The translations under genes and the position numbers were made by a program. A stretch of 64,000 nt of DNA, taken from IMG/VR virus record IMGVR_UViG_3300009537_002640, positions 62,001-126,000 of that record. The stretch is one strand, 5' to 3'. Under the pieces are notes generated by a model. It was not told where the DNA came from. It worked only from the letters and a program-made list of their open reading frames with translations, and did no database searches. Positions 1 through 32,945 of the stretch are shown here, one piece after another (within the stretch, counting starts at the first letter, position 1; each line of letters starts with the position of its first letter).

Positions 1-93
1 TTTGCGCATCTCAGGATCATTCCTTTGCTCGCGCATCCACTCTACATTGGAAGGGTCTATCTCTTTCAGATATACTTTATCACCAACTATCAT
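1..93 (-). CDS. GNAT/RimJ-RimL family acetyltransferase, N-terminus only (runs off the window)
   Basis: Not in the ORF track. ATG at 93 overlaps the TGA of the upstream gene. It reads MIVGDKVYLKEIDPSNVEWMREQRNDPEMRK, which resembles the start of RimL/PseH-like GNATs. Confidence 0.6.
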   Translation of the reverse strand, partial: MIVGDKVYLKEIDPSNVEWMREQRNDPEMRK

Positions 94-593
94 CAGTTAG
101 TCCTCTTGCTCGTTTTCTTTTTACGAGCGGGCTTCTTAGACGTCTTTTTCTTAGTAGTGGCCTGAGCTATCACCTTATCCTCTTCCGACATAACTATAGC
201 TGGAGCTGTTTGCTCTTGCGGCAAATTCACCACTATAGGAGTTGTGCCCTTGCTTACAACATGAGTATCTTTATTGTCTTCATCTGAACCATATGCGGAA
301 GATGGGTCATTAACAAACTCTATCACTATGCACTCAGTCTCGGCCTCTACTTGATGCATAAAACCTGGAGGAATTGATAGAGATGTTCCTGGTTCAAAAG
401 GAATGCCCTTTATCTGCCCATTCTTAATTACTCTAATGGTAGCTTTTCCGCCCAGAAGATAAAGCACTTTCGTTAGCCTGGTATGAAACACCATGTCGGT
501 TTTCTTACCTGCTTCTATCTTGTGTACGGCACCACCAACATTACGTGCCTTGTCCCAGACAACTGCCCTGGAACCATAACCTATCTCTGACAT
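93..593 (-). CDS. Cupin-domain protein with Lys-rich C-terminal tail
   Basis: Cupin-like motifs MVFHTRLTKVLYLLGG and PGTSLSIPPGFMHQVEA; C-terminus KKKTSKKPARKKKTSKRTN. Confidence 0.65.
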   Translation of the reverse strand: MSEIGYGSRAVVWDKARNVGGAVHKIEAGKKTDMVFHTRLTKVLYLLGGKATIRVIKNGQIKGIPFEPGTSLSIPPGFMHQVEAETECIVIEFVNDPSSAYGSDEDNKDTHVVSKGTTPIVVNLPQEQTAPAIVMSEEDKVIAQATTKKKTSKKPARKKKTSKRTN

Positions 594-603
594 TGTTTTC
601 TCC

Positions 604-1434
604 TTAATATTTTCTTAGCTTCTCTATGATGGGCTGTTCACTTACATACACAGTCTTAATCCCATCACCCAATATAGTCTCAACCTCACGAGCATCACGG
701 CACAACTTACGTAAACCGGTTGGCTCCAATGATGCTGCCTGGTCACTACCATACATTGTACGGTCTAAAGTAATGTGTCGTTCAACTACGGCTGCACCTA
801 GAGATACAGCGAGCAAAGTTGGTAATAGTCCCTTTTCATGCCCGCTGAAGCCGACGCCCTTTGAATCTGGGTATCTTTCGGTGAGAGTCTTAACAACACG
901 AATATTAGACTCCCTGATGTCGGTTGGGTATGTAGAAGTGCAATGCATAACTGTAAAAGGACACTTGTGCTTCCTAAATATTTCTACTGCATGGTCAACC
1001 TGTTCTAGGGTACTCATACCCGTAGATATATAGGTGTGCTTTCCTTCTTGAGCTACAGTCTCTAATAGCTCATCGTATGTCAAGAGCGCTGAAGCAATCT
1101 TATTAAACTCTAGGTCATACTGCTGTAAGAACTTCTGGCTTTCTAAATCCCAGGCGGATGCGCTCCATGCTATACCTTTCTCTTTACAGTATCTATCTAT
1201 CTCGTCGTATTCTTCTTTGCCAAACTCTAAGCCTTCTTTCTGCTGCCTGTTGATTGTTCCCCAAGGCGATTCGCGAGACTTATCTAGCTCTTCCTTTGTA
1301 TACACTAAATCAATAGTGCGCTTTTGAAACTTAACAGCATCACATCCTGCATCTACTGCCAGGTCGATTAGCTTCTTGGCAATTCCCAAGTCACCATTGT
1401 GATTAATGCCTATCTCGGCTATAATATAAACCAT
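604..1434 (-). CDS. neuB: N-acetylneuraminate/nonulosonate synthase (NeuB family), short form without AFP-like domain
   Basis: IIAEIGINHNGD, DAVKFQKR, KIASA, ISTGM, MHCTSTYP, GFSGHE, VERHITLDR..GSDQAASLEP. Confidence 0.93.
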   Translation of the reverse strand: MVYIIAEIGINHNGDLGIAKKLIDLAVDAGCDAVKFQKRTIDLVYTKEELDKSRESPWGTINRQQKEGLEFGKEEYDEIDRYCKEKGIAWSASAWDLESQKFLQQYDLEFNKIASALLTYDELLETVAQEGKHTYISTGMSTLEQVDHAVEIFRKHKCPFTVMHCTSTYPTDIRESNIRVVKTLTERYPDSKGVGFSGHEKGLLPTLLAVSLGAAVVERHITLDRTMYGSDQAASLEPTGLRKLCRDAREVETILGDGIKTVYVSEQPIIEKLRKY

Positions 1435-1438
1435 AACT

Positions 1439-2320
1439 TTACCCCTTATTACAAACTAAAAAGATTGTATCGTGTTTTCTAATGGTTTTAAGAAATGCGG
1501 AATACGCCGCGTTCATAAAACTCAAGCTCTTAAATTTACCTGGCTTACCTCTTAGCAGCCAATACAAATGATTATCGAATGAATATCTCTGTAACCTTAT
1601 TTCTTTCTCTACTAAAAACCTCTCATTGTTTAGTAATTTGGTCAGCGATTTTGGTGTGAAGTATGAACAATGGGCGTTCTGAAAATAGAAGCTCTTGTAC
1701 TTCTCTAGCCCCACCAAGGCGTCATTGAGATTTGGAACCTCCACTATCAGACGACCATTATGACCTAACACATCATAAATATGATGCAAGAAAGGGGCTG
1801 GCTCAGGAATATGCTCTAATACATGAAAGAGGGTTACTGTATCTACCTCTTCCTTCCAATCAGAAATATTGCATAGCCTAACGTCCAGTCCTCTTTCTTG
1901 TGCGCTTCTAACTCGTGCCTCGCTAATATCTACGCCTATAGCTCCATCAATCAAACCAACAAAGTTAGAATAACCAGTGCCAACATCTAAAAGCTTGAGG
2001 TTTGGGTGTACATATTTATTCACAAGCTTTGCTCTTCTTTTATCATCTCTGGAGATTTTGGCTTGGTATTTTACGCCTGTTTCACCAGCAATAGAGGTAA
2101 CAAACTTCTTTTGCTGGTCATTATCATAAAATCTTTTGTACTCCTCATCAGTCATGACGGGGTTCAAATACACCAAATCACACTGAATACATTGCTCTAC
2201 AAGCGGGGATGGAAATGTTCCAAGGTCCTGATATTCACGAACATACATGTGTCCTCGTCTACCAAACGAATGCGTAACATCAGACTTGCATATAGGACAA
2301 TCTCTTTCTATAACTTCCAT
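1439..2320 (-). CDS. Class I SAM-dependent methyltransferase with N-terminal CxxC..CxxC
   Basis: CPIC..CIQC, LLDVGTGYS, TLFHVLEHIPEP, LIVEVPN; this form is typical of glycan-cluster methyltransferases. Confidence 0.85.
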   Translation of the reverse strand: MEVIERDCPICKSDVTHSFGRRGHMYVREYQDLGTFPSPLVEQCIQCDLVYLNPVMTDEEYKRFYDNDQQKKFVTSIAGETGVKYQAKISRDDKRRAKLVNKYVHPNLKLLDVGTGYSNFVGLIDGAIGVDISEARVRSAQERGLDVRLCNISDWKEEVDTVTLFHVLEHIPEPAPFLHHIYDVLGHNGRLIVEVPNLNDALVGLEKYKSFYFQNAHCSYFTPKSLTKLLNNERFLVEKEIRLQRYSFDNHLYWLLRGKPGKFKSLSFMNAAYSAFLKTIRKHDTIFLVCNKG

Positions 2321-3480
2321 TATAGTTCCGCTATCACTTGATCTATAAATGTATCCTTGATTATCTCTAGCTGAGTTTTCTTGGCATCCATATTTGATTT
2401 GTAGGTTGCCAGATTATTTACAACTTCATCAATTGTATTTCTTAGGTCGGCTATATCTCCCTCGGTATCCTTATTTAGTGGGATAATCAAATTACCAAGG
2501 TCTACATCTTCTAGAAACCACTTTACCTTATTATGTTCGCCTATACCAATGGGCGGAGTGTTTTGCCCAAAAGCAATAATATTAGCATGTCCTCGCATAC
2601 CTATCACCAAGTCCATTTGATTATATATGTCTACGAACAGTCCTGCCTTGTAATCAAAGGGTGGATATAGCTCCTCAGCCATACAATCAGATACTACATA
2701 GCCATCGCTACCTAAAACGCTAGTAAATAAATCCCTCATATCTTCTTTGTCGAGCTTATTAGATTCATTGGGCATTAGGTGTTCAATCAAATACACATAA
2801 GCATTATGTTCCTGTGCTTTTTCTTTTAGCACATTGAGAGTGGTATCCAGTTTGGTCTTCGCCAAATTACTATCATTGCTCAAATCAAATCTTTGGTTCC
2901 ACCTATCTGTTGCCCAATTGAACCCTATCTTGAGCCTGTTATTATCTAAACAGCTATGAGTATAGGGATAAGCCTCCGCAAATACCGCTGCATCAGGCAC
3001 TACGGTTACATTGGTCATATCAACACCGAAGGATTCCATGGTTTCATAAGTGCCCATATTGCGCACAGAAAATGCTACGGAGTTGTTCACTACTTCTTTT
3101 ACACTATCCCACATAGACTGCGGGAAGCCCACTTGGTCATGCGGAAATTCATTATAGCCTATTCCATATACGGCTATAGGCACTGTGATACTAGCTATAT
3201 TCTCTGTGTCAATGTTGAATTGCCAACCAGAGTGACTGTTGTCTTGTGGGCGATGAAAAATAAAACCGCCGCCGCCCAGCAATAACATATCGGCCTCTGC
3301 ATTCAACTTAGCAATTATTTGAGGAGAAAAGTAAGTGTTCTGATTATCCACATATACAAAACGCAACTCTGTCCCAGCTGGTGCTCGGTCACGCATTATT
3401 TTAGTGGTGGCTATCTGTAAAGCTCTGTCGCCATAGTTGTTTGACCAGCCGCCTACATGCCATATTGTCTTAACTGTCAT
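2320..3480 (-). CDS. Polysaccharide pyruvyl transferase family protein
   Basis: NNYGD, LLLGGGG, YGIGY, FSVRN, VVPDAA, VIGMRGHANIIA. Confidence 0.85.
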   Translation of the reverse strand: MTVKTIWHVGGWSNNYGDRALQIATTKIMRDRAPAGTELRFVYVDNQNTYFSPQIIAKLNAEADMLLLGGGGFIFHRPQDNSHSGWQFNIDTENIASITVPIAVYGIGYNEFPHDQVGFPQSMWDSVKEVVNNSVAFSVRNMGTYETMESFGVDMTNVTVVPDAAVFAEAYPYTHSCLDNNRLKIGFNWATDRWNQRFDLSNDSNLAKTKLDTTLNVLKEKAQEHNAYVYLIEHLMPNESNKLDKEDMRDLFTSVLGSDGYVVSDCMAEELYPPFDYKAGLFVDIYNQMDLVIGMRGHANIIAFGQNTPPIGIGEHNKVKWFLEDVDLGNLIIPLNKDTEGDIADLRNTIDEVVNNLATYKSNMDAKKTQLEIIKDTFIDQVIAEL

Positions 3481-4156
3481 GAATTAAAGCCTCCGCCATT
3501 GTCCAGTCTGCAGAATCATTAATGTCTACAGAAAAGTTTTTACCCATCCTGTAAGCATATACCTTTCCTTGATGAAAGCTGTTTGTCTTCTTCAAATGTT
3601 CTGCAGTAGAAACAAAAATAGAACCATTTACTACAAATAATGGTTTCTTTATATCCTGTCTTTGTACCTCAAAATTATCAACCCTAACAATAGTTTGCAT
3701 GACGCCCTCTTCATCTATCCATCGTAAACTACTGATTGGCTTATCAAACCTAGACACACTGATAACAGAATCACAGTCCTTCCTGTCTAAAAGCGTAAAA
3801 GCTGCATCAATATCTAGGTTGGTTCTCAGTGGAGATGTAGCCAATAGCATAGCTACACTCCCTATTATTATACCCTGTTCTTCGTAAAAGTTTAAGCACT
3901 CCAATACAGCGTGGACTGCATGAACATCATCTTGGGCATTCTCTTGAGAGCGCCAATGAATCTCTGCGCCATATTGCTTTGCCACTTCGGCAATCTCAGC
4001 ATCCTCTGTAGACACCACAACCCTATCAACTGTGCGCGCCGTGAGAGCAGACTGAATACTATATGCCACCAAGGGCTTCCCTGCCAACTCTTTAATGTTC
4101 TTTCGCTCGATGGCCTTAGAACCACCACGAGCAGGTATTACACACATGTTTATCAT
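3470..4156 (-). CDS. neuA: Acylneuraminate cytidylyltransferase (CMP-nonulosonate synthetase)
   Basis: VIPARGGSKAIERKNI, VVVSTED, LLATSPLR, NGSIF, SVDINDSADW. Confidence 0.92.
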   Translation of the reverse strand: MINMCVIPARGGSKAIERKNIKELAGKPLVAYSIQSALTARTVDRVVVSTEDAEIAEVAKQYGAEIHWRSQENAQDDVHAVHAVLECLNFYEEQGIIIGSVAMLLATSPLRTNLDIDAAFTLLDRKDCDSVISVSRFDKPISSLRWIDEEGVMQTIVRVDNFEVQRQDIKKPLFVVNGSIFVSTAEHLKKTNSFHQGKVYAYRMGKNFSVDINDSADWTMAEALIHDS

Positions 4157-4569
4157 GCATCTTTGTCCTCTGGCCCTACTGAGCCTGGCCCTCTCCTAGG
4201 ACTCTCGTAATCTTTCAAGAAGTCTCTAAGGTCTTTCGCACTGCTACCGTCCTCTCTAAGCCTGAAGCCCCTATCATCCACATATATATCTCCTAATATT
4301 TTGCCCAAGTGTAGCTCGTGAAACTTAACTCCCCAGCCCTCTAGTTGTGATTTAGTAAGACAGTACCAATCCTTGTAGGCTAAAGCTCTATTACCATTGT
4401 GCTTACCCATACCTCGTGCTGTGTGAAATATTATGTAATGCCCCGCATCGTACATTTCATTTATCACTGCTATCATGTCTTCATAAGGATATGCATCCTC
4501 ATAATGTCCGTTTGTGTTATTGCAAATAGTTCCGTCGATGTCGAACACTAAACGCCACTTTTGATTCAT
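4153..4569 (-). CDS. Small HAD-family phosphatase (capsule-biosynthesis EcbF-like)
   Basis: FDIDGTIC (motif I), HTARG (II), GK (III), DIYVDD (IV). Confidence 0.85.
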   Translation of the reverse strand: MNQKWRLVFDIDGTICNNTNGHYEDAYPYEDMIAVINEMYDAGHYIIFHTARGMGKHNGNRALAYKDWYCLTKSQLEGWGVKFHELHLGKILGDIYVDDRGFRLREDGSSAKDLRDFLKDYESPRRGPGSVGPEDKDA

Positions 4570-5324
4570 TATCTACTCCTCATAAAATCATCGATATCTA
4601 AACCGATAGCTTTCTTTATCAAACCATGACTAAAATCATAGACCACTATTCCTGCATCAGTAAACTTGGTGTTAATCATTTTGTCTATATACTCTGCACT
4701 TTCTTGAAAAAACTTTGTTGTCTTATATTCTTTACCCTCGTGTGTAATTGTTATGACTGGGCTTCTATTTGCCAGCTTAGTCGTACTTTTGCGATAATGG
4801 CTATCTGGATAATAATGATCAAACTCATCCTTGAACATTAAGTCCGCACCTATGAGATATATTTTCTTTGAACCTATCATTGCGGCAAAATGCATAGCGT
4901 TTAGTGTTACCGTTCCTACCGATAAACCCTTGTGTCCTCTCGGGCCTATAAGAAACCCCTCGTGTTCTTTATGTTTGTATTTACGAATATTAGGCAGCCC
5001 ATCGAAATAAGAACGAGTCGCAGGAACAGCATTAATGTCCTTGGGGAATTTGTTCAAACTTTTGTTATTCAGTATACGAGGCAGGTCTTTTCTATAGGGC
5101 TCTTTCTTCATAGACTCATAGGATTTAATAGGATTCTTCTCCAGTATCATATGATAATCTAACTGCTCTTCGAAATCCTTGGTGGAAAAGTTCAATCCCA
5201 CAATAACATCAAACTTACCCCGCAACTGGTCTTTATACGGAACTAGGGTTTTAGTTGAATGACCCGTACCTATTATAAGCACAGAACTACCAGGGTGTTT
5301 GTTTTCAAAATCACTTGGTGTCAT
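4569..5324 (-). CDS. DUF115/Maf-like (GT-A variant) putative nonulosonate transferase
   Basis: VLIIGTGHS, IVGLN, TVTLNAMHFAAMIGSKKIYLIGADL..HYY; this pattern is seen in DUF115/Maf and CstII-like folds. Confidence 0.65.
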   Translation of the reverse strand: MTPSDFENKHPGSSVLIIGTGHSTKTLVPYKDQLRGKFDVIVGLNFSTKDFEEQLDYHMILEKNPIKSYESMKKEPYRKDLPRILNNKSLNKFPKDINAVPATRSYFDGLPNIRKYKHKEHEGFLIGPRGHKGLSVGTVTLNAMHFAAMIGSKKIYLIGADLMFKDEFDHYYPDSHYRKSTTKLANRSPVITITHEGKEYKTTKFFQESAEYIDKMINTKFTDAGIVVYDFSHGLIKKAIGLDIDDFMRSR

Positions 5325-6445
5325 ATTTGTGAAATCCTATTTTGTATTCGTTTATGAGCCTGTCCATCAAATGTTATACCCATCTTGTCTAACAAGGCTT
5401 TCTGTTTCTCTGGCTCATGATATCTTCCATATCTCAGACAATCCCTTAGCTTCTGGTCAAGGTCTTTTAAATCAGTTATCTCTACTGCCGCACCTGACTT
5501 CACAGTATCGTAGGGGTCGTATCCGTGCTGGCTATTCTCTTTGGTGCGCACAACAAACAAAGGCTTGCCCATAGCACATGCCTCTATCTCTACTGTCGAA
5601 CAACCATTCACTACAAAGATGTCAGCAAAGTAATAATCCAGCACATGATTTTGTCTTGGCCCGATATAACTCACTCTGGTCTTCTCGTATGTCTTTCTGT
5701 ACTTGTCTCGTAGTTCTGGTAGTCCGTGCTTTTTGAAATAGCCCATTAGCTTTTCTTTTTCCTGCCTAGGTTTCACATATAACAAAAACCTTTCGCTATG
5801 TGCCAACCTACTTAATTCAACAGTGGTCTTAAAATAATCTTCGTTGTGATTTACGAAATCTATTCTATCCTTGCAGCAGAATCCGAAGAAGGCAACAACC
5901 TTTGCTTCTGGATTTTCTTTGTATGCTGTGGGGAAATCTACTGGTAATCTTTCTTTCCTATTATGCTCTACGCCATTGTAAAGTATGTCTAGTTGGGGCA
6001 AAGCATTCAGTAGTATCTTATCCTCGCCAACTTTAGCCACATGAGTTATCCAATCTGTAAATACATCATCCCAGGCACCACAATAAAGGTCGCAGCCCTT
6101 CCACACTTCGGTCCTAAACGCTGCTGGCTTAATCAAACCCTTCACATGATTTCCTACTAACCCATGACTAACGTAGACCTTCTTACAACCAGCAGGCAGT
6201 CTAACTCCCTCTGCACATGGCAAGGATGCCTGAACATACACATCTGGCTGAAACTCATCCACACACTGTTGTAGCTCTTTGCTATTGGCATAATACTTTA
6301 GTGTATCGATTCCAAAGTTATCAGCATCTCCGGGCTCTGGTTTTCCTGGCAACACCATGCGCTGTTTCATTTCCAAGCTCATGGGAAATGCCTGAAAAGC
6401 CCTCTTGTGTGCTGGGGATGTTGCTACATACAGTACTCGTTTCAT
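5321..6445 (-). CDS. GT-B fold protein, CDP-glycerol glycerophosphotransferase/sialyltransferase-like
   Basis: YVSHG, ALPQLD, YVKPR, ADIFVVNGCSTVEIEACAMGKPLF, FDGQAHKRI. Confidence 0.65.
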   Translation of the reverse strand: MKRVLYVATSPAHKRAFQAFPMSLEMKQRMVLPGKPEPGDADNFGIDTLKYYANSKELQQCVDEFQPDVYVQASLPCAEGVRLPAGCKKVYVSHGLVGNHVKGLIKPAAFRTEVWKGCDLYCGAWDDVFTDWITHVAKVGEDKILLNALPQLDILYNGVEHNRKERLPVDFPTAYKENPEAKVVAFFGFCCKDRIDFVNHNEDYFKTTVELSRLAHSERFLLYVKPRQEKEKLMGYFKKHGLPELRDKYRKTYEKTRVSYIGPRQNHVLDYYFADIFVVNGCSTVEIEACAMGKPLFVVRTKENSQHGYDPYDTVKSGAAVEITDLKDLDQKLRDCLRYGRYHEPEKQKALLDKMGITFDGQAHKRIQNRISQI

Positions 6446-9637: not shown

Positions 9638-9649
9638 GTTAAACTCCTC

Positions 9650-13351: not shown

Positions 13352-13362
13352 CTTCTCTCCTC

Positions 13363-22367: not shown

Positions 22368-22368
22368 A

Positions 22369-25106: not shown

Positions 25107-25110
25107 AACA

Positions 25111-26125: not shown

Positions 26126-26136
26126 GTTAGACCTCC

Positions 26137-26571
26137 TTAGATTTTAGCTAATCTAATAATCATTAGCTCTTCCCTAAGCTCTTGCGCTTTTTTGTTGGCC
26201 GCGCTAGCTTCTTGCTTACGGCCCAACACTTTACACGTTCCAGCATAGTGATGCCAGAAACGAAAGGAATCTATAGTACGGAATTGAATCTTATCCCATC
26301 CATGATTTTCGAACATTTTCTTAAACCATTCGGGTGGTTCATTGCCTATCCTAGACTCTTTTTTCCAATTGATTAGCTCAGTTACAATAATATAAAGCAT
26401 TATTCCTGAGACTGCAAAAACACCCGGCACAGTAAATAGAGATGGGATTACTTTGTTTTCGTCTGGTCGCTCGTTAAAGAGCAACATAGACCACGCTGCT
26501 ATCGGAACTTGCCACCATCTCCATATGCGTCGAGGCAGGCTAATCACCGGCTCTGCCTTTTTTATCGACAT
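26137..26571 (-). CDS. Hypothetical membrane protein
   Basis: Hydrophobic segment LFTVPGVFAVSGIMLYIIV. Confidence 0.6.
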   Translation of the reverse strand: MSIKKAEPVISLPRRIWRWWQVPIAAWSMLLFNERPDENKVIPSLFTVPGVFAVSGIMLYIIVTELINWKKESRIGNEPPEWFKKMFENHGWDKIQFRTIDSFRFWHHYAGTCKVLGRKQEASAANKKAQELREELMIIRLAKI

Positions 26572-26573
26572 TC

Positions 26574-27368
26574 TTATTCCTTTCTACCATCCAATATAAG
26601 GCCAGTGTCAAACTTAATCACACCCTCGGGGTCTTTATCGGGGTCATATGGAATATAGGGAACGTATACATTGCCCGTCTTTGCTATCATTGCTCGAAAT
26701 TGAGCAAGGCCAGATAATTCCTTAGAGCCCTTCTTGTGAACTTTATTCTTAGCCACTCGATATTCTTTGTCCTTATCTACGTCCAAATGGATTCCCTTTG
26801 GCTCAATATAGGCTCCCATTAGTCCAAGATGCCTTAGACGCCAATACATTGCCGCATCTTCATGACCATATTGACCAAAGGTATTATAGTAGCCCACACG
26901 TTTGAACACTCTCTTTGGCAAGCATAAACAAGCGCCGCCGAGATTTCCGTTCTTGGGTCTAACTCGAACACCATTTATTTCTTGAACAGGAAACTTGAAA
27001 GGCTCTACATTAACACCTGTAATTCCTAATGCGGGAATCTTATCGCACGCATCTGCCATCAATATATCCCACTTATCTGGCACCAACACATCGTCATCAA
27101 TGGTTACAAGATAATCGCCCTGAGCATGAACCAGCCCAGAGTTCCTACCGCCAGCAACACCAAGGTTCTTATCATTAAATACGTAAGTAACTTTTTCGGC
27201 ATTAGTCTTAACCTCTTTAAGATATTCTCTAGTGCCATCAGCAGAGCCATTGTCCACAAATATGAATTCATGTGGTATGGTAGTTTTCTTAATTAGACAC
27301 TCTATAGTTTGTTTCGAATAATGGCACCTATTCCAATTAAGTACCACTATCGACATTAACTTGGTCAT
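26574..27368 (-). CDS. Glycosyltransferase family 2 (paralog of 24303..25106)
   Basis: MSIVVLNWNR, VDNGSADGT, GVAGGRNSGL, TIDDD, YGHEDA. Start set at ATG 27368 (GGAGG RBS). Confidence 0.92.
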   Translation of the reverse strand: MTKLMSIVVLNWNRCHYSKQTIECLIKKTTIPHEFIFVDNGSADGTREYLKEVKTNAEKVTYVFNDKNLGVAGGRNSGLVHAQGDYLVTIDDDVLVPDKWDILMADACDKIPALGITGVNVEPFKFPVQEINGVRVRPKNGNLGGACLCLPKRVFKRVGYYNTFGQYGHEDAAMYWRLRHLGLMGAYIEPKGIHLDVDKDKEYRVAKNKVHKKGSKELSGLAQFRAMIAKTGNVYVPYIPYDPDKDPEGVIKFDTGLILDGRKE

Positions 27369-27561
27369 GTACTTCCTCCGTGTCTTCTGTTCTAATGTCA
27401 AGATTGCCCATCACAAAGTTACTTGTAATCAACAAGTACTTGGCTCGCGGATACACAACACCAGACAAAGTTATATTCGTTATGACAGCTAAGTCTTCTC
27501 CTGAAAGCAGCTTTATCAGCTTAACCCTCAAGCTATACAGAAACTTCTGCCATTTGCTCAT
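27337..27561 (-). CDS. Hypothetical protein
   Basis: 74-aa ORF with an ATGA overlap. Confidence 0.5.
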   Translation of the reverse strand: MSKWQKFLYSLRVKLIKLLSGEDLAVITNITLSGVVYPRAKYLLITSNFVMGNLDIRTEDTEEVHDQVNVDSGT

Positions 27562-29693
27562 TTCTTTCTAAACCTCACAAAGGTTCTAACAGAGCGTCGT
27601 CTCACAACCGAGGTGGGCGTTCTAATGTGTGAAAACTTCGGACGCCATTTCCTTGCAAGATTATTCAATAGCCGCATAAACTCTTTCTTCCCTGAAACCA
27701 AACTTCCAGACCTAGAGTCATGAACAAGCGGACACAGAATACCATAGTTCTTAAATCCATTGCTTAGAGCATTAAGGCAAATATCTGGCCCATAGAAATG
27801 GAAACCGTCAAAGTTTCTTTCGTCAAACCTTAATCCGCTGCTCTTACGAATAATCATGCAGTGCTCGTCAACGGTCTGTACTGGGAAAACCTTTGCACGT
27901 TTTGTCGCCTGCCATTGCAAAGAACCCTTAATACTATGCACCACGCCTGCAGTATCATCTCGCTTTGTTATACCAGCTGTTCCTAATACGCCCCACTTCT
28001 TTCTGTCTGGTAAAGCTTCTATTTCCTCTATACGGTCGAATAGCATATCCACCCAACCCTCATAGAAAAGCACGTCCTGGTGACAGAGAACAACCACATC
28101 TGCTTTTGCCTTCTCTATTCCTATATTCAGTGCTTGAGCTGCTGAATAAGGATTGCCGAAGTTCATGACTGGAATGACTTCATAGTTCCGCTGGGTGTCG
28201 TTCTTAAACAGAGAGCCAACTATGTAATTTCTGTATTGCGATAGGTTGTTCACGCAAGTCACAAAAGACACCTTGACTGGGTACATTCCCTTGGCCGAAT
28301 TTCGTTGATAGGCACCAAAGTCTTTATCTACCTTTGGCAACCACCTACTCTTAAATGCCTGAATGCCCTTTTGTTGTTTTTCTCCAGCAGTCTTATGCTT
28401 ACGTTGTGTTACGCTTTCCGCATGAATAACTTCTGCCCTAGAAGCATATAGAACCTTCTTGTTAAGCCTCTCTCTAACCTTAAGGCATAAGTCTACATCT
28501 TCATAGCAGAAATAGTACACGGGGTCAAAGCCCTCTACTGCCCTAAAGTCCTTTTCTCTAATCAACAAACATGCGCCTGTGACCGCCTGGAAAAATCTAT
28601 CTTCCTCAGCAAACCCCTTAGGGAATGAACCAAGCACAGCCTTACCTAAGTTAGCTGGCCCTTGAGGAATAAAGGCGATACCCGCATGCTGTATACGATT
28701 CTCAGAATATAGTAACTTTGCTCCAACTATACCAATCTCGGGGTGCCTATGAATCTTAGACATCATTTCATATAACCAGAATGGCTGAGGCTCCGTGTCA
28801 TCATTTAAGAACAGCAAATATTCGCCTGTAGCAAACTTAGTTAGCTCGTTGTTTATAGATGAGAATGAACCTTCTGTGGTACCTCTCTCTACTAACTTAA
28901 TCCTCGGGTCTTGTAATTGCTTAATGAATTCAGCTGTGCCGTCTGTAGATACACTATCTCCTACTATCCACTCCCAGTTAGGATACCCTGTATTTTTATC
29001 AAGCGCAGCATAGCACTTTTTAATGTTCTCGATACCATCTCTGGTAGGAGTTATGATGCTAACCTTAGGCACATCACTGGGCTTTCTAATGAGCACCTTG
29101 TCAACCATAGTAGTGCTTCGGGATTGCTTGTAGGGTTTAAACTTCATTGTTTGGTCTTCCTTCACCGTAACTATTACCGGAGGCTTCGGCTTGAGCTTAG
29201 CCTTTAGACTTGCACGTTTATTATCCTTAGTTACCTTGCTTTTTGCCTGTGGTATTGTAGGTAACTTAGGCTCACGAGGTATATTGGGCTTTCCGCTTAT
29301 AATCTGATACCTAATCGTATTTATGAAAACATTACCAGTAGCGTCGTTTGGTCTCCATACCCTAAGATACACAGGAAGATTACCAGGAAACTTAGGCACA
29401 GGCACAGATACCGTGTAGTCTTTTGTTTCGCTACCGGTCACAAATACTGATATATGGTCTCCGTCGTAATTCTTTCCTCCGAAAAAATTTACTAACAGTG
29501 CGCCGTTGCCACTATTTTTAGAGGCAGATATCGTAACCTTATAATGCGAGTTTGGAGCTACTCCTACTGGCACCATAATAATAGAATCTTTTCGCGGCAT
29601 TGTTACGCATGTTGCATTGTCTTTTCTTATTGTGCGTATTGCTCTACCACGCCAGCGGTAGCCATTTCCACCAATTACTGTAGGAGCTGCCAT
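27558..29693 (-). CDS. Multidomain glycosyltransferase: beta-sandwich N-domain + GT2 + second GT-A domain
   Basis: GT2: VSIITPTRD, FLNDDTE, QHAG, AVTGACLL, YEDVDLCL. Second GT-A: SAAQALNIG, LCHQDV, VDEHCMI, FHFYGPDICL. Confidence 0.88.
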   Translation of the reverse strand: MAAPTVIGGNGYRWRGRAIRTIRKDNATCVTMPRKDSIIMVPVGVAPNSHYKVTISASKNSGNGALLVNFFGGKNYDGDHISVFVTGSETKDYTVSVPVPKFPGNLPVYLRVWRPNDATGNVFINTIRYQIISGKPNIPREPKLPTIPQAKSKVTKDNKRASLKAKLKPKPPVIVTVKEDQTMKFKPYKQSRSTTMVDKVLIRKPSDVPKVSIITPTRDGIENIKKCYAALDKNTGYPNWEWIVGDSVSTDGTAEFIKQLQDPRIKLVERGTTEGSFSSINNELTKFATGEYLLFLNDDTEPQPFWLYEMMSKIHRHPEIGIVGAKLLYSENRIQHAGIAFIPQGPANLGKAVLGSFPKGFAEEDRFFQAVTGACLLIREKDFRAVEGFDPVYYFCYEDVDLCLKVRERLNKKVLYASRAEVIHAESVTQRKHKTAGEKQQKGIQAFKSRWLPKVDKDFGAYQRNSAKGMYPVKVSFVTCVNNLSQYRNYIVGSLFKNDTQRNYEVIPVMNFGNPYSAAQALNIGIEKAKADVVVLCHQDVLFYEGWVDMLFDRIEEIEALPDRKKWGVLGTAGITKRDDTAGVVHSIKGSLQWQATKRAKVFPVQTVDEHCMIIRKSSGLRFDERNFDGFHFYGPDICLNALSNGFKNYGILCPLVHDSRSGSLVSGKKEFMRLLNNLARKWRPKFSHIRTPTSVVRRRSVRTFVRFRKK

Positions 29694-29710: not shown

Positions 29711-30562
29711 TTATTCGTCATCTTGTGTAACTATAGGTTGCTTGTTCTTGTAAACCATATAGTTAGGGTTCTGCAAATACAACTGGTGGTCATTAAATAT
29801 CTTTCCGCTCCATTTCTCTCGAAACAACTTCATATTTGTCTTAAGATGTGGGTGCTGTTTAAATGTCCCTGACACACCTTCGTGATGTATAAGTTGAGCT
29901 GCTGCACAATATACAGAGCTTTTTTTCAACTCATGCCTCAGTCTCAAGCAGTAATCTATATCTTCATATCCGTAAATATATCCTTCATCAAACCCGCCTA
30001 AAGTCTCAAAGTCTTCTCTGCGAACTAAAAGACATGCGCCTGTCACTGCTTGATAATATCTACTTGATGCCATAAATTGTGTTGGCGGTTGTTTGTAGTA
30101 AATATGATAAGGTAATCCGTTGGTTCTCTCATCAAACATTACTCCGCAATGCTGCACTTGTTTCTTATTTGGGTACAACAATAACGCTCCAACCGCCCCC
30201 ACTTTTGGGTCAGTATCAAGCACCGTGGTCATTCCAACCAACCATGACTCGTTAACTGGCTCTATGTCGTCATTCATGAACAGTATATATTCAGAGTCGC
30301 CTTCGGCTGCAGCTTCATTATTGTTAGATGAAAACGAGCCATCATTACTGTCATTGTAAATAGGTTCTATACGATCGTTAAACAAAATGTCATCTATATA
30401 CATGGCGTCATGTATAGCCTGCTTAACTTCATCGTTAGGGTCATTAGCCCATATGTACCATCTGTAATCCACAAACTTAGTGCGCTCTGTAATAGTCTCT
30501 AAGCATATCTTGAACTTATCTACACTTCGATATGTGGTAGTAACAATATCAACCTTAGCCAT
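29711..30562 (-). CDS. Glycosyltransferase family 2
   Basis: SFSSNNNE, FMNDD, VQHCG, AVTGACLL, YEDIDYCL, HHEG. Confidence 0.9.
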   Translation of the reverse strand: MAKVDIVTTTYRSVDKFKICLETITERTKFVDYRWYIWANDPNDEVKQAIHDAMYIDDILFNDRIEPIYNDSNDGSFSSNNNEAAAEGDSEYILFMNDDIEPVNESWLVGMTTVLDTDPKVGAVGALLLYPNKKQVQHCGVMFDERTNGLPYHIYYKQPPTQFMASSRYYQAVTGACLLVRREDFETLGGFDEGYIYGYEDIDYCLRLRHELKKSSVYCAAAQLIHHEGVSGTFKQHPHLKTNMKLFREKWSGKIFNDHQLYLQNPNYMVYKNKQPIVTQDDE

Positions 30563-30569
30563 ACTAACC

Positions 30570-30830: not shown

Positions 30831-30831
30831 G

Positions 30832-31506
30832 TCATCCTTCCTTTCTGATAATGTCGAGAAAAATCTCCCTTTTTTTATTATATTCTTCAGCCAAGTTAAA
30901 ACCCTCAGCTTTGAATGTCGTGTGGTAAAGGTGCTGGACGTTCGTGCCTTCCGTAATTCCCAGCTTGAACCCGGCCCCCTTTGCCCTATGCGAAAATAAA
31001 ACATCCTCAAAAAACCCACGCCCAAAATTTTCTGGCATGAGACCTACTTTATCAAACACCTCGCGTTTAACTAACAGACACCAGCCTACCAGATATGAAA
31101 ATCTTTCTGCCCGCGTCTTTGCTTCGCCAGGTTGATAATTCCAATTGCTATCCATTCGTCCGCCAGCAGGAGCAGTCATATCGAATTCATCCATAGACTG
31201 AACCATAGTGCTAAGCCACTTGGGATTTGGTAATCGGATATCATTGTTGAGTAAGCATATGAGATTATGCTGCGCCTCTCTTATACCCCGATTGACTGTC
31301 TTTGCGAAACCTAAATTTTTCTCATTCGTAAGTACCTTGACTTGTGGGAACAATTTAGGTATAGCTTTTGATATGGGTTCCTTAGAGCCGTCGTCTACAA
31401 CAATAATCTCAGTCTCTACACCGTATGTCTTAACCAAATCTCTTAAGCAATCTATCGTTACTTTCATCTGGTTGTATACTGGAATAACTATACTAACCTT
31501 CTTCAT
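30832..31506 (-). CDS. Glycosyltransferase family 2
   Basis: VSIVIPVYN, VVDDGS, NLGFAKTVNRG, LLNND, GWCLL, FEDV. Confidence 0.93.
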   Translation of the reverse strand: MKKVSIVIPVYNQMKVTIDCLRDLVKTYGVETEIIVVDDGSKEPISKAIPKLFPQVKVLTNEKNLGFAKTVNRGIREAQHNLICLLNNDIRLPNPKWLSTMVQSMDEFDMTAPAGGRMDSNWNYQPGEAKTRAERFSYLVGWCLLVKREVFDKVGLMPENFGRGFFEDVLFSHRAKGAGFKLGITEGTNVQHLYHTTFKAEGFNLAEEYNKKREIFLDIIRKEG

Positions 31507-31507
31507 C

Positions 31508-31771
31508 TTACCAGCTCCCGTTGCTAAAATAGTCTAGAAAAATACCCATTCCTTCTGCTTGAGTTAAAGCTCTATCTGTCGTTGCCCAACCCGGTGACAG
31601 TTTATAGTCGCCTATAGGGGTGCCATACTTAAGATGACCTATATAAAACGACCTTGTTATCTGTTCCATTATCATCTCAAAGGTTATACCAAATGGCATA
31701 CGACCTTCTATGTGTTTAGAAAACTCATCATACATTTGGTCAGCGCGGGAGTTTGTAAGTTCCTGGCTCAT
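31508..31771 (-). CDS. Hypothetical protein
   Basis: 87-aa in-operon ORF. Confidence 0.55.
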   Translation of the reverse strand: MSQELTNSRADQMYDEFSKHIEGRMPFGITFEMIMEQITRSFYIGHLKYGTPIGDYKLSPGWATTDRALTQAEGMGIFLDYFSNGSW

Positions 31772-32945
31772 AATGCGGAATCCTTCCTTCTACAGCATCA
31801 ATTATCTTTTGGGACGCAGCAGTCCAACTAAACCCATTAACCACGCGCTCCATCTCTGGCTTAAACTTTTTCATAAGCTCGTCGTACTCATTAACAGCTT
31901 TGTGCATAAGCTCTTTTGTATGCTCCTTATTAGCCTCGCCTATTTTTGACTTAGGGTTAAATGTCCAATAAGACTCTACTGGCTTAGCATGTCGCATACT
32001 AGTTTTAATCAGCAGAGAATTATCTTCGTTCATAAAGTCTAACTGCCCACTATAGTTTGGGGCTATACTCAACAACCCGCAAGCCATAGACTCTAGCAAT
32101 GGCATTCCAAAGCCCTCTGCTCCTGTAGTAGTTATGTGACAATCGCAAGCATTATAGATGCTAGACACATTATCTACATGGCCACTTAGCAACTCTATCT
32201 CCGGAATATCCTTACCAAACTTTTGATGCAGCTTCTTAAAGACATCACCCAGGACTATTTCAAATGCCTTTCGGCCCTTAGGATTTTTCTTCATGTCGTA
32301 CTGACCATCACTATGCTTATACACTTTGGTCTTCAGTACCAAGCACACATCATCTTTAGCAGTGAATGCTTCACAATAGGCATTTAGTAGTAGCTCTATG
32401 TTCTTTCTATAGTGAGGTGCTACTACCGATACAAACTTAAACTTCTTCTTGGTGTTAAGTTTGACTTTCGGTATATCTGGATTAAATACCTTTGTATCTA
32501 TACCGTGTGGTATTACAAAAGTTTTTTCTGGCGGCACCCCATTAATAGCAAAAACCTCAGCTGAAAAGTTCGAACTTGGGAAGTAATAATCCACAAAGTG
32601 ATAGAACTTTTTCCACTGAGGATGCCAATAGGTTATTTCGTAGTTATATATTGCACACTTATATCTGCTGTTTGCTAAAAACCGCTGAGGAAAATTCTGT
32701 GGAACCGTATAGGTTATATCTATATCAATAGGCTTCTTGCCCGGCCCGAACTCTAAAAGCTTCAGGGCCGATTCTGCAAGCCTATCTTTTTCTCTATCAG
32801 CGTTGTTTGCTAACCCATTTGTGGATGCAACATAGACATTATGCCCCATTTCTTCAAAGGCATTCATCAAGCGGTCCATCACATATGCCCAGCTCAAACC
32901 GCCTTGCATCCAGGTATAGGTGCGAATATTCAAAGGTTTTTCCAT
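31740..32945 (-). CDS. Glycosyltransferase family 4 (GT-B)
   Basis: VIPHGID..FNP, RKNIELLL.AY, EGFGMPLLESMACGL..PNYSG.LDF. Confidence 0.92.
   Translation of the reverse strand: MEKPLNIRTYTWMQGGLSWAYVMDRLMNAFEEMGHNVYVASTNGLANNADREKDRLAESALKLLEFGPGKKPIDIDITYTVPQNFPQRFLANSRYKCAIYNYEITYWHPQWKKFYHFVDYYFPSSNFSAEVFAINGVPPEKTFVIPHGIDTKVFNPDIPKVKLNTKKKFKFVSVVAPHYRKNIELLLNAYCEAFTAKDDVCLVLKTKVYKHSDGQYDMKKNPKGRKAFEIVLGDVFKKLHQKFGKDIPEIELLSGHVDNVSSIYNACDCHITTTGAEGFGMPLLESMACGLLSIAPNYSGQLDFMNEDNSLLIKTSMRHAKPVESYWTFNPKSKIGEANKEHTKELMHKAVNEYDELMKKFKPEMERVVNGFSWTAASQKIIDAVEGRIPHYEPGTYKLPR

Follow-up and report, generated by a model that had tools for sequence, protein, structure and literature searches.

Why an uncultured jumbo phage would carry a large set of sugar-synthesis genes directly after its tail genes, and where the resulting glycan would be placed, are the questions raised by this locus. 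We analyzed a 64,000-nucleotide window (positions 62,001 to 126,000 of IMG/VR record IMGVR_UViG_3300009537_002640, a 206.5-kb contig; coordinates below are those of the window). The initial annotation had described a glycan-synthesis cluster of 33 kb or more, with about 13 transferase-like genes, downstream of baseplate genes and co-oriented with them, and that observation was confirmed and is, if anything, understated. All long ORFs are on the minus strand, so transcription runs from the tail genes down into the cluster, and the first glycosyltransferase (GT) gene starts at 32945, 49 nt after the stop of a 940-aa gene. Within 93 to 32945 we identified 12 GT genes with 13 catalytic domains, namely, 2 GT4 genes, 6 GT2 genes with 7 domains (earlier counted as 7 GT2-type genes), 3 TagF-like GT-B genes and 1 stand-alone Maf/MptE-like gene. 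However, the block does not end at window position 1 but continues 23.3 kb beyond it, for a total of 56.27 kb and about 83 ORFs, of which at least 46 are sugar related, with 16 GT genes and three NeuB paralogues.

Next, to confirm that the contig is a phage, its genes were compared with PHROGs and with Bacillus phage G. The major capsid protein (MCP) matched phrog_2522 at 1e-78 and is 53.5% identical to the phage G MCP, and a protease domain and baseplate genes are present. Upstream of the cluster, a gp25-like baseplate/sheath-initiator protein (45749 to 46177) matched phrog_2669 and phrog_120 at about 1e-12 (Sheath_initiator, 26 bits, below cut-off), and a 1,075-aa baseplate wedge (gp6/J-like) protein (42509 to 45736) matched phrog_6 at 1.5e-35 and is 30.7% identical to the phage G baseplate wedge subunit. 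The description of the cluster as lying directly after baseplate genes rests on homology for only these two genes. The 2,185-aa protein (35952 to 42509), in the position of the third wedge/fiber gene, had no family hit but has a syntenic homologue in all related loci at 29 to 66% identity. The 940-aa protein (32995 to 35817) is a conserved beta-sandwich protein with a dockerin module (AF2 pLDDT 79.7; local dockerin match at probability 1.00, and weak tail-protein matches), with 147 homologues at E<=0.001, of which the 120 listed were 32 to 93% identical and some carry a Pfam dockerin. Both proteins are assigned as distal tail parts (the 940-aa protein as a distal tail or baseplate-periphery protein) by position and weak fold matches, and the 940-aa protein is a candidate glycan acceptor. 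The 49-nt gap before the first GT (32946 to 32994) holds no terminator but is overlapped by a sigma-70-like match (TTAACA-18-TATAAT, 11 of 12, at 33009 to 32980), although overall site counts were not above chance.

To define the gene content of the block, ORFs were searched against Pfam, NCBIfam and PHROGs, and selected products were compared with ESM Atlas structures and PDB sequences. The first gene of the block, a 401-aa GT4 (31740 to 32945; Glycos_transf_1, 9e-11; phrog_2170, 3e-33), is the most conserved GT of the lineage. It is followed by a 224-aa GT2 (30832 to 31506; Glycos_transf_2, 1e-22), present in most relatives, and a 283-aa GT2 (29711 to 30562; Pfam GT2 families), present in most relatives down to 26 to 38% identity, both belonging to the conserved core. 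A 711-aa protein with two GT2 domains (27558 to 29693; Glycos_transf_2 in two stretches, 3.5e-26, and Glyco_tranf_2_5, 2.4e-13) is conserved at 55 to 76% identity in close relatives, and a 275-aa GT2 (26574 to 27401; Glycos_transf_2, 4e-24), also part of the conserved core, has homologues in most related loci. Two small hydrophobic, single-pass ORFs of 62 and 144 aa (25937 to 26571; hydropathy peaks, 1.64 and 2.21) are the only membrane-type ORFs in the block, a point missing from the initial annotation; the 144-aa ORF had no family hits and matched only itself among relatives. Two further GT2 genes of 267 and 255 aa (24303 to 25106 and 25111 to 25878, together 24303 to 25878; Glycos_transf_2, 5e-23 and 2e-19) precede a 331-aa GT4 (23118 to 24113; Glyco_trans_1_4, 4.5e-15) with homologues in close relatives at 45 to 47% identity. 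A run of small phage-type filler ORFs of 51 to 249 aa follows (20859 to 23121), including DUF4326 (1e-21; phrog_464, 2e-30) and a conserved 249-aa protein 45% identical to a homologue in L026 (L labels denote viral contigs used for comparison), whereas the rest had no hits.

The next part of the block holds a near-complete pseudaminic-type pathway. A 363-aa TagF-like GT-B (19802 to 20893; Atlas structure TM 0.74/0.76 to a Glyphos_transf cluster), conserved upstream of PseB in a relative, has a 359-aa homologue in relative L096. A MerR/HTH domain fused to a PseB-like UDP-GlcNAc 4,6-dehydratase (18567 to 19715; Polysacc_synt_2, 5e-80; MerR, 3e-10; PseB, 338 bits, cut-off 408) also occurs as the same fusion in L096. 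A 314-aa protein (17370 to 18314) without hits in Pfam, NCBIfam or PHROGs separates it from a PseC/ArnB-like sugar aminotransferase (16142 to 17368; DegT_DnrJ_EryC1, 1e-122; PseC, 342 bits, cut-off 423; ArnB, 358 bits). These are followed by a short-chain dehydrogenase/reductase (15120 to 15833; adh_short_C2, 9e-44), a true GlmS, glutamine-fructose-6-phosphate transaminase (13363 to 15111; TIGR01135, 649 bits, and NF001484, 662 bits, both above cut-off), and NeuB2, a second short-form nonulosonate synthase (12527 to 13414; NeuB, 2e-65; NeuB_NnaB, 256 bits, and PseI, 196 bits, below cut-off; PDB 6NCS, 1.7e-47). A PseG-like UDP-sugar hydrolase (11676 to 12527; PseG, 53 bits, cut-off 154; weak C-terminal part of Epimerase_2), a second CMP-sugar synthetase (10874 to 11599; CTP_transf_3, 2e-16; weak KdsB-family hits), a small RfaE domain II/TagD-like nucleotidyltransferase (10455 to 10877; CTP_transf_like, 1.7e-10; rfaE_dom_II, 48.8 bits, and g3p_cytidyltrns, 33.2 bits, both below cut-off) and a weakly PseH-like GNAT N-acetyltransferase (9650 to 10210; Acetyltransf_3, 3e-22; PseH, 34.6 bits, below cut-off) come next.

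The remaining genes of the window are mainly tailoring and transfer enzymes. A class III (HemL-like) aminotransferase (8339 to 9637; Aminotran_3, 1.5e-48; PRK06209, 354 bits, below cut-off), probably involved in NulO side-chain tailoring, has a homologue in L096 and in 13 of 79 viral NeuB loci. A hexapeptide-repeat sugar acyltransferase (7512 to 8342; Hexapep; WcaF and NeuD/PglB/VioB family hits, below cut-off) is followed by a TagF/TagB-domain GT-B (6442 to 7515; Glyphos_transf, 8e-8; BFO_1060 family, 59.6 bits, cut-off 200) that keeps an HP motif in an alignment and is a candidate Pse/Leg-type transferase, as BFO_1060 orthologues are shown NulO transferases (PMC5420450). A 374-aa TagF-like GT-B glycosyl/glycerophospho-transferase (5321 to 6445) had no Pfam or NCBIfam hit, but its Atlas structure matched a Glyphos_transf cluster (TM 0.74/0.79). 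The stand-alone Maf/MptE-like (DUF115) protein (4569 to 5324), a candidate NulO transferase, scored only 20.5 bits in Pfam (cut-off, 34.6) and had no PDB sequence hit, although its structure matched a "motility associated factor glycosyltransferase" cluster at TM 0.75/0.68. A small HAD-type phosphatase candidate (4153 to 4569; weak HAD hits) travels with NeuB1-type genes, as a homologue lies next to NeuB in L014 and L015 and in 37 of 79 IMG/VR NeuB loci. The last genes encode a PseF-like CMP-nonulosonate synthetase (3470 to 4156; CTP_transf_3, 2e-22; PseF, 148 bits, cut-off 206), a CsaB-type polysaccharide pyruvyl transferase (2320 to 3480; PS_pyruv_trans, 4e-21; CsaB, 37.8 bits, below cut-off), a SAM-dependent methyltransferase (1439 to 2320; Methyltransf_23, 8e-16) and NeuB1, a 276-aa short-form nonulosonate synthase without an SAF domain (604 to 1434; Pfam NeuB, 4e-70; NeuB_NnaB, 246 bits, and PseI, 173 bits, both below cut-off). 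The best PDB hit of NeuB1 was 6NCS, a 290-aa sialic acid synthase (2e-45), and homologues 49 to 64% identical were found in 79 IMG/VR loci. The first full gene inside the window encodes a weakly cupin-like 166-aa protein (93 to 593; Cupin_1, 21.5 bits, just below cut-off), and the next genes outside are GNAT, NeuB3, methyltransferase, TagF-like and GT2 genes. Since every Pse/Neu equivalog score is below its curated cut-off, the sialic-acid-like nature of the sugars is supported at the family level only.

The absence of export genes and the continuity of the assembly had been named beforehand as conditions on which the interpretation depends, and both were examined. No flippase, polymerase, ligase, ABC permease or exporter, or polytopic initiating transferase was found in the cluster, in its flanks or in the 192.7 of 206.5 kb (93%) of the contig that was scanned, which leaves out 13.8 kb; over the same range there was no multi-pass membrane protein of these types, no multi-pass membrane protein lies in the cluster itself, and no Bac_transf, Wzx, Wzy or ABC Pfam hit was obtained in our scans or in precomputed lists. 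A chimeric junction of a bacterial polysaccharide locus and a phage contig at about 33 kb, for which nothing speaks beyond the bacterial look of the enzymes, is refuted. GC content is uniform (0.40 to 0.43 across 1 to 56 kb), there is a single coding strand with 97% coding density, phage replication genes and tubulin follow on the far side, the identical contig is present in both JGI and IMG/VR records, and the same junction occurs in 61 of 62 independently assembled related contigs.

We then sought to establish whether the association with the tail genes is conserved. The order baseplate-J, 2,185-aa gene, 940-aa gene, GT4, GT2, GT2 is kept in 61 of 62 related viral contigs, down to about 30% identity. 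GT4 identity tracks that of the tail protein, with 53 to 76% against 53 to 74% in close relatives and 28 to 39% against 31 to 36% in distant ones. The GT core is a vertically inherited neighbor of the distal tail genes across a deep lineage, and these comparative data add real support for a link to the virion. The first GT starts within 30 nt of the stop codon of the tail gene in 11 of 65 relatives and within 100 nt in 24 of 65, although in many relatives small ORFs separate them. The slot between the 940-aa gene and a tubulin gene, both conserved anchors, measures 5.4 to 7.8 kb in 13 distant relatives, about 40 kb in a 53%-identity relative and 56.3 kb here. The 940-aa family is essentially absent from cellular genomes, with 3 MAG contigs among 185,579 species.

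Overall, the locus is best explained as a phage-encoded glycan factory that needs no membrane export machinery and fills an expandable slot in an uncultured phage-G-like jumbo myovirus. The analysis itself shows that the phage encodes enzymes running from central metabolites to activated sugars (GlmS, a UDP-sugar dehydrogenase, RmlA/B/D-like enzymes and a PMM-like HAD), a PseB-C-H-G-type route feeding short-form NeuB synthases, two or three CMP-sugar synthetases, 16 soluble transferases, and methyl-, acetyl- and pyruvyl-transferases, without the export and initiation genes named above in the part scanned. What follows is inferred from sequence alone. In this view, late in infection the conserved GT4/GT2 core would build a glycan in the cytoplasm directly on the phage's own distal tail or fiber proteins, with the adjacent 940-aa protein and the giant fiber proteins as prime candidates, and the lineage-specific expansion would then elaborate it and cap it with one to three nonulosonic acids, using the BFO_1060-like, TagF-like and Maf-like transferases. 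In favor of this view, the NulO transferase candidates belong to families that in bacteria act on protein-bound glycans or directly on proteins (for BFO_1060, PMC5420450). The likely benefit would be a changeable particle surface serving as a shield, an adhesin or mimicry, which is speculative. The initial annotation, which proposed a nonulosonate-capped glycan on virion proteins acting as a shield, host mimicry or anti-adsorption coat, is partly supported: phage identity, the absence of a chimera, the missing exporters and the size of the gene set hold, but the acceptor and the role of the glycan are not shown, and sequence tools cannot show the acceptor. We consider virion glycosylation the best-supported reading, at roughly even odds.

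Other destinations of the glycan must be weighed against this reading. Remodeling of the host envelope, in which the phage enzymes hijack the host's lipid carrier, initiating transferase and export or ligation machinery to change LPS, capsule, teichoic acid or S-layer glycans, and so might block superinfection by competitors or alter the surface before lysis, is the main rival and remains possible, though less likely. GT2, GT4 and TagF-type enzymes without TM segments routinely act on undecaprenyl-linked intermediates at the inner face of the membrane; TagF-like and TagD-like genes and a CsaB-family pyruvyl transferase are typical of cell wall polymers; and WcaF/NeuD-like acetyltransferases and RmlABD-like enzymes likewise belong to bacterial surface polysaccharide loci. 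PHROGs files the GT4 family under "moron, auxiliary metabolic gene and host takeover," the structural proteins have no obvious Ser/Thr-rich acceptor tracts, the two membrane-type ORFs lie inside the GT block, and the sigma-70-like site and the small ORFs in relatives make separate, earlier transcription possible. Nevertheless, the lack of export and initiation genes in 93% of the genome speaks against it, and a GT core that co-diverges with the tail genes across a lineage found in many habitats is easier to explain by a co-inherited phage acceptor than by fast-changing host envelope acceptors that differ between strains. Moreover, about 46 genes' worth of pathway seems costly for a surface destroyed at lysis by what looks like a lytic jumbo phage, no integrase having been seen in the gene lists read.

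Glycosylation of host proteins, for example, capping of flagellin, pili or S-layer proteins with NulOs to mask receptors, or production of a soluble or secreted glycoconjugate, such as a cytoplasmic oligosaccharide with a metabolic or osmotic role, is unlikely. In bacteria, Maf-type and BFO_1060-type enzymes act on flagellins and S-layer glycans (for BFO_1060, PMC5420450), and cytoplasmic flagellin glycosylation needs no export system. However, the Maf-like protein lacks the N- and C-terminal domains that accompany the catalytic domain in bacterial Maf proteins, and this reading explains neither the tail-adjacent GT core nor the need for about 16 transferases. DNA hypermodification, in which the transferases would glycosylate modified bases of the phage genome to evade restriction, as in T-even phages and the more complex DNA glycans reported recently, is very unlikely. 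Phage GTs are classically DNA modifying, diverse DNA glycans are known (cited in PMC12619734), a thymidine kinase lies inside the slot of a relative, and dUTPase and RNR genes occur elsewhere on the contig, but no dCMP/dUMP hydroxymethylase-type or other base-hypermodification gene was seen in the Pfam lists for 93% of the contig. The scale of the set (16 GTs, three NulO synthases and pyruvyl, methyl and acetyl tailoring) and the tail-adjacent synteny do not fit, and the metagenome assembled normally with short reads.

Virus-encoded glycosylation is already known, and what would be new here is its very large size. The gene content is far larger than any tailed-phage glycosylation set that we could find, and the earlier statement that the phage has more autonomy than known few-GT systems is correct for tailed phages. 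Giant-virus clusters of 6 to 33 genes are a close precedent, and the clade-specific variation of the slot resembles that of giant-virus fibril clusters (PMC10117803).

The 64 kb window comprises positions 62001 to 126000 of a 206,495 bp metagenomic contig (JGI 3300009537 Ga0129283_10000002, also IMGVR_UViG_3300009537_002640), in the same orientation. Every long ORF was found on the minus strand, with a coding density on that strand of 97% over the 110 kb first assembled. GC content was flat at 0.40 to 0.43 from 1 to 56 kb and rose from about 0.41 to 0.43 to 0.46 over the last 8 kb (56001-64000), which covers structural genes; we have no explanation for this rise. A tRNA scan found none, and a megablast search of 44 kb of the window against 50,697 GenBank phage records found no match.

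Next, to verify the transferase and sugar-synthesis genes listed in the initial annotation, the proteins were searched with Pfam, NCBIfam and the ESM Atlas. The observation held almost item by item. In the direction of transcription, the transferases are a GT4 at 31740-32945; GT2 at 30832-31506, 29711-30562, 27558-29693 (711 aa, with two GT2 domains), 26574-27401, 25111-25878 and 24303-25106; a second GT4 at 23118-24113; TagF-like GT-B folds at 19802-20893, 6442-7515 and 5321-6445; and a stand-alone MptE/Maf-like domain of 251 aa at 4569-5324, giving 12 genes with 13 catalytic domains. Between and after them lie the predicted sugar-supply genes, namely a MerR-HTH::PseB-like dehydratase, a PseC-like aminotransferase, an SDR, a genuine GlmS that scores above its equivalog cut-off, NeuB2, a PseG-like hydrolase, two CTP_transf_3 CMP-sugar synthetases, a small RfaE/TagD-like nucleotidyltransferase, a GNAT, a HemL-like aminotransferase, a hexapeptide acyltransferase, a HAD, a pyruvyl transferase, a methyltransferase and NeuB1. 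Small ORFs without family hits are interleaved, for example across 20859-23121. In the dehydratase (18567-19715, minus strand), a MerR/excisionase-type HTH domain is fused to the N terminus of the PseB-like enzyme, and the same fusion is present in a 53%-identity relative (L096:13288-14442); it may be a self-regulating first pathway enzyme.

The pseudaminic-type assignment is a family-level statement, since every Pse/Neu equivalog score lies below its curated cut-off. Best hits were PseB 338 bits (cut-off 408), PseC 342 (423), PseH 35 (93), PseG 53 (154) and PseF 148 (206), whereas the NeuB-type synthase scored 256 bits with the NeuB model and 196 with the PseI model (cut-off 340). All six enzyme types are thus present, and the product could be Pse or another 5,7-diamino NulO. 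The NeuB paralogues are short forms without the C-terminal SAF domain; their best solved relative, 6NCS, is itself a 290 aa sialic acid synthase, indicating that the truncation is a natural class and not decay. The Maf-like assignment is also weak by Pfam (20.5 bits, cut-off 34.6) and rests on predicted-structure similarity to a Maf-family cluster (TM 0.75/0.68). Because this protein aligns only to the central domain of Maf clusters of 530 to 838 aa and lacks the flanking N-terminal (Maf_flag10_N) and C-terminal substrate-recognition domains, it is Maf-like in fold but not a Maf family member. The BFO_1060-like GT-B (6442-7515) has a TagB/Glyphos_transf domain, no TM segment and an HP motif, but scores 59.6 bits against the 200-bit cut-off of NF046086. 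PDB sequence searches with the Maf-like and TagF-like ORFs were uninformative.

Walking along the contig showed that the sugar genes continue for 23.3 kb beyond window position 1. This stretch holds a second GNAT, a third NeuB, three methyltransferases, a fourth TagF-like protein, a GT2, two GT1/GT4 genes, a DUF2334 protein, a saccharopine-dehydrogenase-like protein, a thioredoxin, two or three NDP-sugar epimerase/dehydratases, a UDP-sugar dehydrogenase, cupins and an RmlA-like nucleotidyltransferase. A Macro domain protein and an AAA_28 ATPase (contig 52480-53999; locus L002:18604-20114) sit in the middle of the block, and a LAGLIDADG-like ORF supported only by a faint hit also lies in the block. 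The block ends at contig position 38730 and is followed by a TubZ-like tubulin gene of 477 aa (contig 37295-38728, equivalent to window -24705..-23272; locus L004:14289-15722), a UvsW-like helicase, a DnaC-like loader and DnaB. The slot from the stop codon of the 940 aa gene (32995-35817) to the tubulin gene is 56.27 kb and holds about 83 ORFs of at least 50 aa, of which at least 46 are sugar-related and 16 are transferases. With GlmS, the PseB/C/G/H-like enzymes, three NeuB, two or three CMP-sugar synthetases, the UDP-sugar dehydrogenase and RmlA/B/D-like proteins, the virus encodes nucleotide-sugar biosynthesis as well as a clustered set of glycosyltransferases.

We then asked whether the contig is a true phage. 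Upstream of the cluster lie a gp25-like protein, a gp6/J-like baseplate wedge protein (42509-45736), a tail-tube-initiator-like protein and an unusual number of giant proteins (among them those at 35952-42509 and 51427-56172, and in loci L006, L008, L010 and L012), of 3811 aa (PTL_trimer domain), 2185, 2180, 1702 (beta-helix), 1581, 1342 (protease domain), 1195, 1075 (the wedge protein) and 1040 aa, most of them without a family hit. Further on lie a major head protein (phrog_2522, 1e-78), 53.5% identical to that of Bacillus phage G, and a head-maturation protease domain, in agreement with a phage-G-like jumbo myovirus of the Caudoviricetes. Phage G itself has no sugar genes after its baseplate genes, where small ORFs and then replication genes follow. 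PHROGs searches with 20 proteins of the right-hand region returned, besides the head protein and the protease domain, only weak lysin hits and one weak hit of unknown function, and terminase and sheath were not recognized because the phage is too divergent for PHROGs. Elsewhere, the contig carries a stress- or sporulation-type signaling set (about 24.4-32 kb; locus L181:11741-19236), comprising a PrkA kinase-DUF444-SpoVR trio, a DisA-type diadenylate cyclase, a YpsA/SLOG protein and a PMM-like HAD, of which PrkA, DUF444 and SpoVR are 70 to 74% identical in a relative. At its right end (L180:531-4403), a 1290 aa protein combines a type-I topoisomerase domain with a 2',5'-RNA-ligase-type domain. 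A chimeric join at about 33 kb, which had been named beforehand as a result that would overturn the finding, is excluded by composition, by the phage genes on both sides and, decisively, by the comparative data described below. A bacterial contractile-injection-system island was likewise considered and rejected, given the replication genes and tubulin beyond the block, the major head protein, the shared locus order and the scarcity of the 940 aa family in cellular genomes.

To search for export machinery, a hydropathy scan was run on the block and then on 192.7 of 206.5 kb of the contig (all but positions 1-13768). Only two coding-strand ORFs with three or more hydrophobic segments were found. 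One is a 647 aa protein inside the tail module (47504-49447, minus strand), with seven hydrophobic segments in its first 300 residues, which may be a tape-measure or membrane-insertion/ejection protein; the other is an 83 aa ORF lying within the span of the 3,811 aa gene. No Pfam list for the regions read, ours or precomputed, contained Bac_transf, Wzx, Wzy, O-antigen ligase, ABC-2 or membrane-synthase families, and all GT2 proteins lack TM segments, so none is a membrane synthase. The locus therefore does not have the gene content of a Wzx/Wzy-, ABC- or synthase-dependent polysaccharide locus. Nor does it have that of the wall teichoic acid pathway, since four TagF-like folds and a small cytidylyl/adenylyl-transferase are present but no TagO, TagA or TagGH was found in the same scans. 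Two small single-pass or hydrophobic ORFs (62 and 144 aa, 25937-26571) sit inside the GT block; they resemble nothing known, and no homologue of the 144 aa ORF was found in relatives.

The 940 aa protein encoded immediately before the first GT has 147 homologues at E <= 0.001, of which the 120 listed are 32 to 93% identical and lie on contigs of up to 481 kb, many from sediments. None was found in GenBank phages by tblastn, and only three lie in 185,579 species genomes, all on MAG contigs from unrelated phyla. An AF2 model of the protein (pLDDT 79.7) gave no significant full-length PDB match, only weak tail-protein matches and a local match to dockerin (probability 1.00), so that its role as a tail part rests on position. 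The predicted dockerin-type calcium-binding module is also recognized by Pfam in many homologues; dockerins are unusual in phage tail proteins and suggest a cohesin-like partner on the virion or host. A search for Ser/Thr-rich acceptor tracts in the structural proteins found none.

To examine how this arrangement is conserved, 80 related viral loci with 10 kb flanks were compared with the annotated proteins. The order baseplate-J, 2185 aa, 940 aa, GT4, GT2, GT2 (followed by the double GT2 and a further GT2) recurs throughout. In the window, the conserved GT core comprises the GT4 at 31740-32945 and the GT2 genes at 30832-31506, 29711-30562, 27558-29693 and 26574-27401. Of 62 non-self loci with at least 5 kb of downstream DNA, 61 have the GT4 orthologue and 54 have three or more GT ORFs. 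GT4 identity follows that of the tail protein, with 53 to 76% against 53 to 74% in the close group and 28 to 39% against 31 to 36% in the distant group, indicating that the GTs are vertically inherited core genes and not recent cargo. The GT4 start lies within 30 nt of the stop codon of the 940 aa gene in 11 of 65 relatives and within 100 nt in 24 of 65. In the phage studied here, the gap between the two genes (32946-32994) is 49 nt and holds the best minus-strand sigma-70-like match of the region (TTAACA-18-TATAAT, 11 of 12). Nevertheless, promoter and terminator consensus scans did not exceed shuffled expectation, and no shared intergenic motif was evident in the 14 gaps of at least 35 nt, so these scans gave no indication of expression timing.

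In a distant relative, the whole module consists of GT4, GT2, an unknown gene, GT2 and an NDP-sugar 4,6-dehydratase, followed by a homing endonuclease, the tubulin gene and a GH25 lysozyme. In 13 such loci, the distance from the 940 aa gene to tubulin is 5.4 to 7.8 kb, and the tubulin homologues, at 38 to 46% identity, sit right after the minimal sugar module, making tubulin a conserved anchor of this jumbo-phage lineage. The 53%-identity relative L096 has the extended GT set plus the HTH::PseB fusion, a CMP-sugar synthetase, the small nucleotidyltransferase, the HemL-like aminotransferase and HisH/HisF-like genes, and its slot is about 40 kb by inference. Overall, a conserved minimal module sits between two conserved anchors and has expanded about ten-fold in this phage, so that cluster content varies by clade around a fixed position. 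A GIY-YIG/NUMOD3 endonuclease sits in the slot of a distant relative; homing endonucleases may contribute to slot turnover.

We also evaluated how unusual such sugar genes are among phages. NeuB-type genes occur in 3 of 50,697 GenBank phage records, one of which is a bacterial contig, and the two real ones (LR756508.1 and MH319754.1) carry small sets of 3 to 6 related genes. In contrast, at least 547 IMG/VR stretches encode NeuB relatives, and among the 79 best (loci L098 to L176) CMP-synthetase, HAD, SDR, PseB/C-like, HemL-like and GT4 genes often accompany the short-form NeuB. NulO modules are therefore a recurrent feature of uncultivated phages that is nearly absent from isolate genomes, although we found no paper describing this in the literature that could be searched. 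None of the sets observed approaches this locus in size or has three synthases.

The gene content, the lack of export genes in the 93% of the contig read, the phage identity, and the synteny and expansion of the slot are established by the sequence analysis. The initial annotation had proposed that the phage builds a nonulosonate-capped glycan on its own virion proteins, and this interpretation is only partly supported, with only indirect support from the synteny with the tail genes. What follows is inferred, including the activity of the enzymes and the identity of the acceptor. In this view, the conserved GT4/GT2 core would glycosylate a phage-encoded acceptor in the cytoplasm, most plausibly the adjacent 940 aa protein or the giant distal tail or fibre proteins. 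The expanded part would then elaborate the glycan and cap it with nonulosonates through the BFO_1060-like and other TagF-like GT-B enzymes and the Maf-like enzyme, with methyl, acetyl, pyruvyl and possibly glycerol-phosphate decorations. The main argument is that a GT core conserved down to 30% identity next to the tail genes, across a lineage spread over many habitats, fits a co-inherited acceptor better than host envelope acceptors that change between strains. In addition, the candidate NulO transferases belong to families that in bacteria cap protein-bound glycans (PMC5420450) or modify proteins directly (Maf). Further precedent is that the clade-specific cluster content mirrors giant-virus fibril glycosylation (PMC10117803), and that the B. 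subtilis spore crust shows that a NulO-containing coat can be laid on a particle inside a cell (PMC7439481). We consider this explanation about as likely as not.

Remodeling of the host envelope, using host initiation and export, is a less likely possibility that cannot be excluded, because soluble GT2, GT4 and TagF enzymes normally work on lipid-linked intermediates, and the TagF/TagD-like and CsaB-family genes, the sigma-70-like site before the first GT and the two small membrane ORFs point that way. Modification of host proteins, or a soluble product, appears unlikely, and glycosylation of DNA very unlikely, since no base-hypermodification gene was seen in the Pfam lists for 93% of the contig and the scale does not fit; an assembly chimera is refuted.

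A further reading, which remains speculative and is doubtful on present evidence, is that the slot between the distal tail gene and the tubulin gene is a phage counterpart of a bacterial O-antigen or capsule locus, a hot spot where a whole lineage of huge phages grows and swaps sugar pathways (from about 5 kb to more than 56 kb) to diversify a glycan coat on their own tail fibres. The nonulosonate-capped glycans would then be functional parts of host recognition or particle survival, and might bind host or environmental lectins, mask the particle or tune adhesion in sediments, making virion "serotype" an evolving trait of tailed phages. Virus-encoded glycosylation of virions without membrane machinery is established for giant eukaryotic viruses and, on a small scale, for some mycobacteriophages. 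If the inference holds, this locus would extend it to a widespread uncultured lineage of jumbo phages, at a scale that rivals or exceeds the giant-virus clusters. The core of three to five GT genes, tightly linked to the distal tail genes, provides a concrete, testable system that does not depend on culturing the phage. Should the glycans sit on virions, this would bear on phage host recognition, particle stability and immune recognition of phages.

Several bacterial and phage systems share parts of this gene set. The bacterial protein-linked NulO systems, comprising the Maf flagellin glycosyltransferases and the Tannerella forsythia Pse/Leg transferases (PMC5420450; bioRxiv 10.1101/2020.06.03.131540), similarly cluster a CMP-NulO pathway with a DUF115/MptE-fold enzyme and a TagB-domain GT-B carrying an HP motif, all soluble; however, the Maf-like protein here is the catalytic domain alone, and the T. 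forsythia glycan is assembled for export, which has no counterpart here. In the spore-crust legionaminic acid (sps) system of Bacillus subtilis (PMC7439481), a NulO and rhamnose-type sugar set, including a GT2 (SpsA) and a TagB-domain protein (SpsB), is made in the mother-cell cytoplasm and deposited on a proteinaceous particle, the forespore crust, inside the cell. This is a good mechanistic analogy for decorating a particle in the cytoplasm, although it is a cellular developmental system, and SpsE is only a distant relative of the phage NeuBs (PDB 1VLI, 3e-31 to 4e-33). The NulO sets of other uncultured phages (LR756508.1, MH319754.1 and the IMG/VR stretches) share the short-form NeuB and its neighbors, but comprise about 3 to 15 genes with one or two NeuB, and we did not see them next to the 940 aa tail module. 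The moraphage lineage, with four core GT orthogroups, is described as PolB-encoding and Bacteroidota-linked (PMC12619734), suggesting that it is not the lineage studied here.

The closest known systems are the Megavirinae (Mimivirus-group) fibril clusters and the mycobacteriophage systems. The former (PMC10117803; reviewed in PMC9614988) combine virus-encoded nucleotide-sugar pathways for rare bacterial-type amino sugars with multiple soluble GTs in one cluster, without host-type export machinery, and their content is clade-specific, ranging from 6 to 33 genes, compared with a minimal module of 4 to 5 genes to about 83 ORFs here. Those viruses infect eukaryotes and their glycans have been shown chemically on capsid fibrils, whereas here the virus is a tailed bacteriophage, the acceptor is inferred, and the cluster sits in the tail module, is larger (56 kb) and carries three NeuB-type synthases with CMP-activation genes. 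In mycobacteriophages (Freeman et al. 2023, as cited in PMC12619734), GT genes are likewise reported to lie with the structural genes, and glycans on virion subunits (capsid and tail-tube C termini) to be made without export machinery. Those phages carry only a few GTs and are not known to encode nucleotide-sugar or NulO pathways; the GT4 described here has only 22 to 27% identity to actinophage GTs, and we found no link to the characterized mycobacteriophage enzymes. If the inference holds, this locus works like these two systems but differs in host domain and scale, in its fixed position in the tail module with a conserved core and an expandable slot, and in its three predicted NulO pathways.
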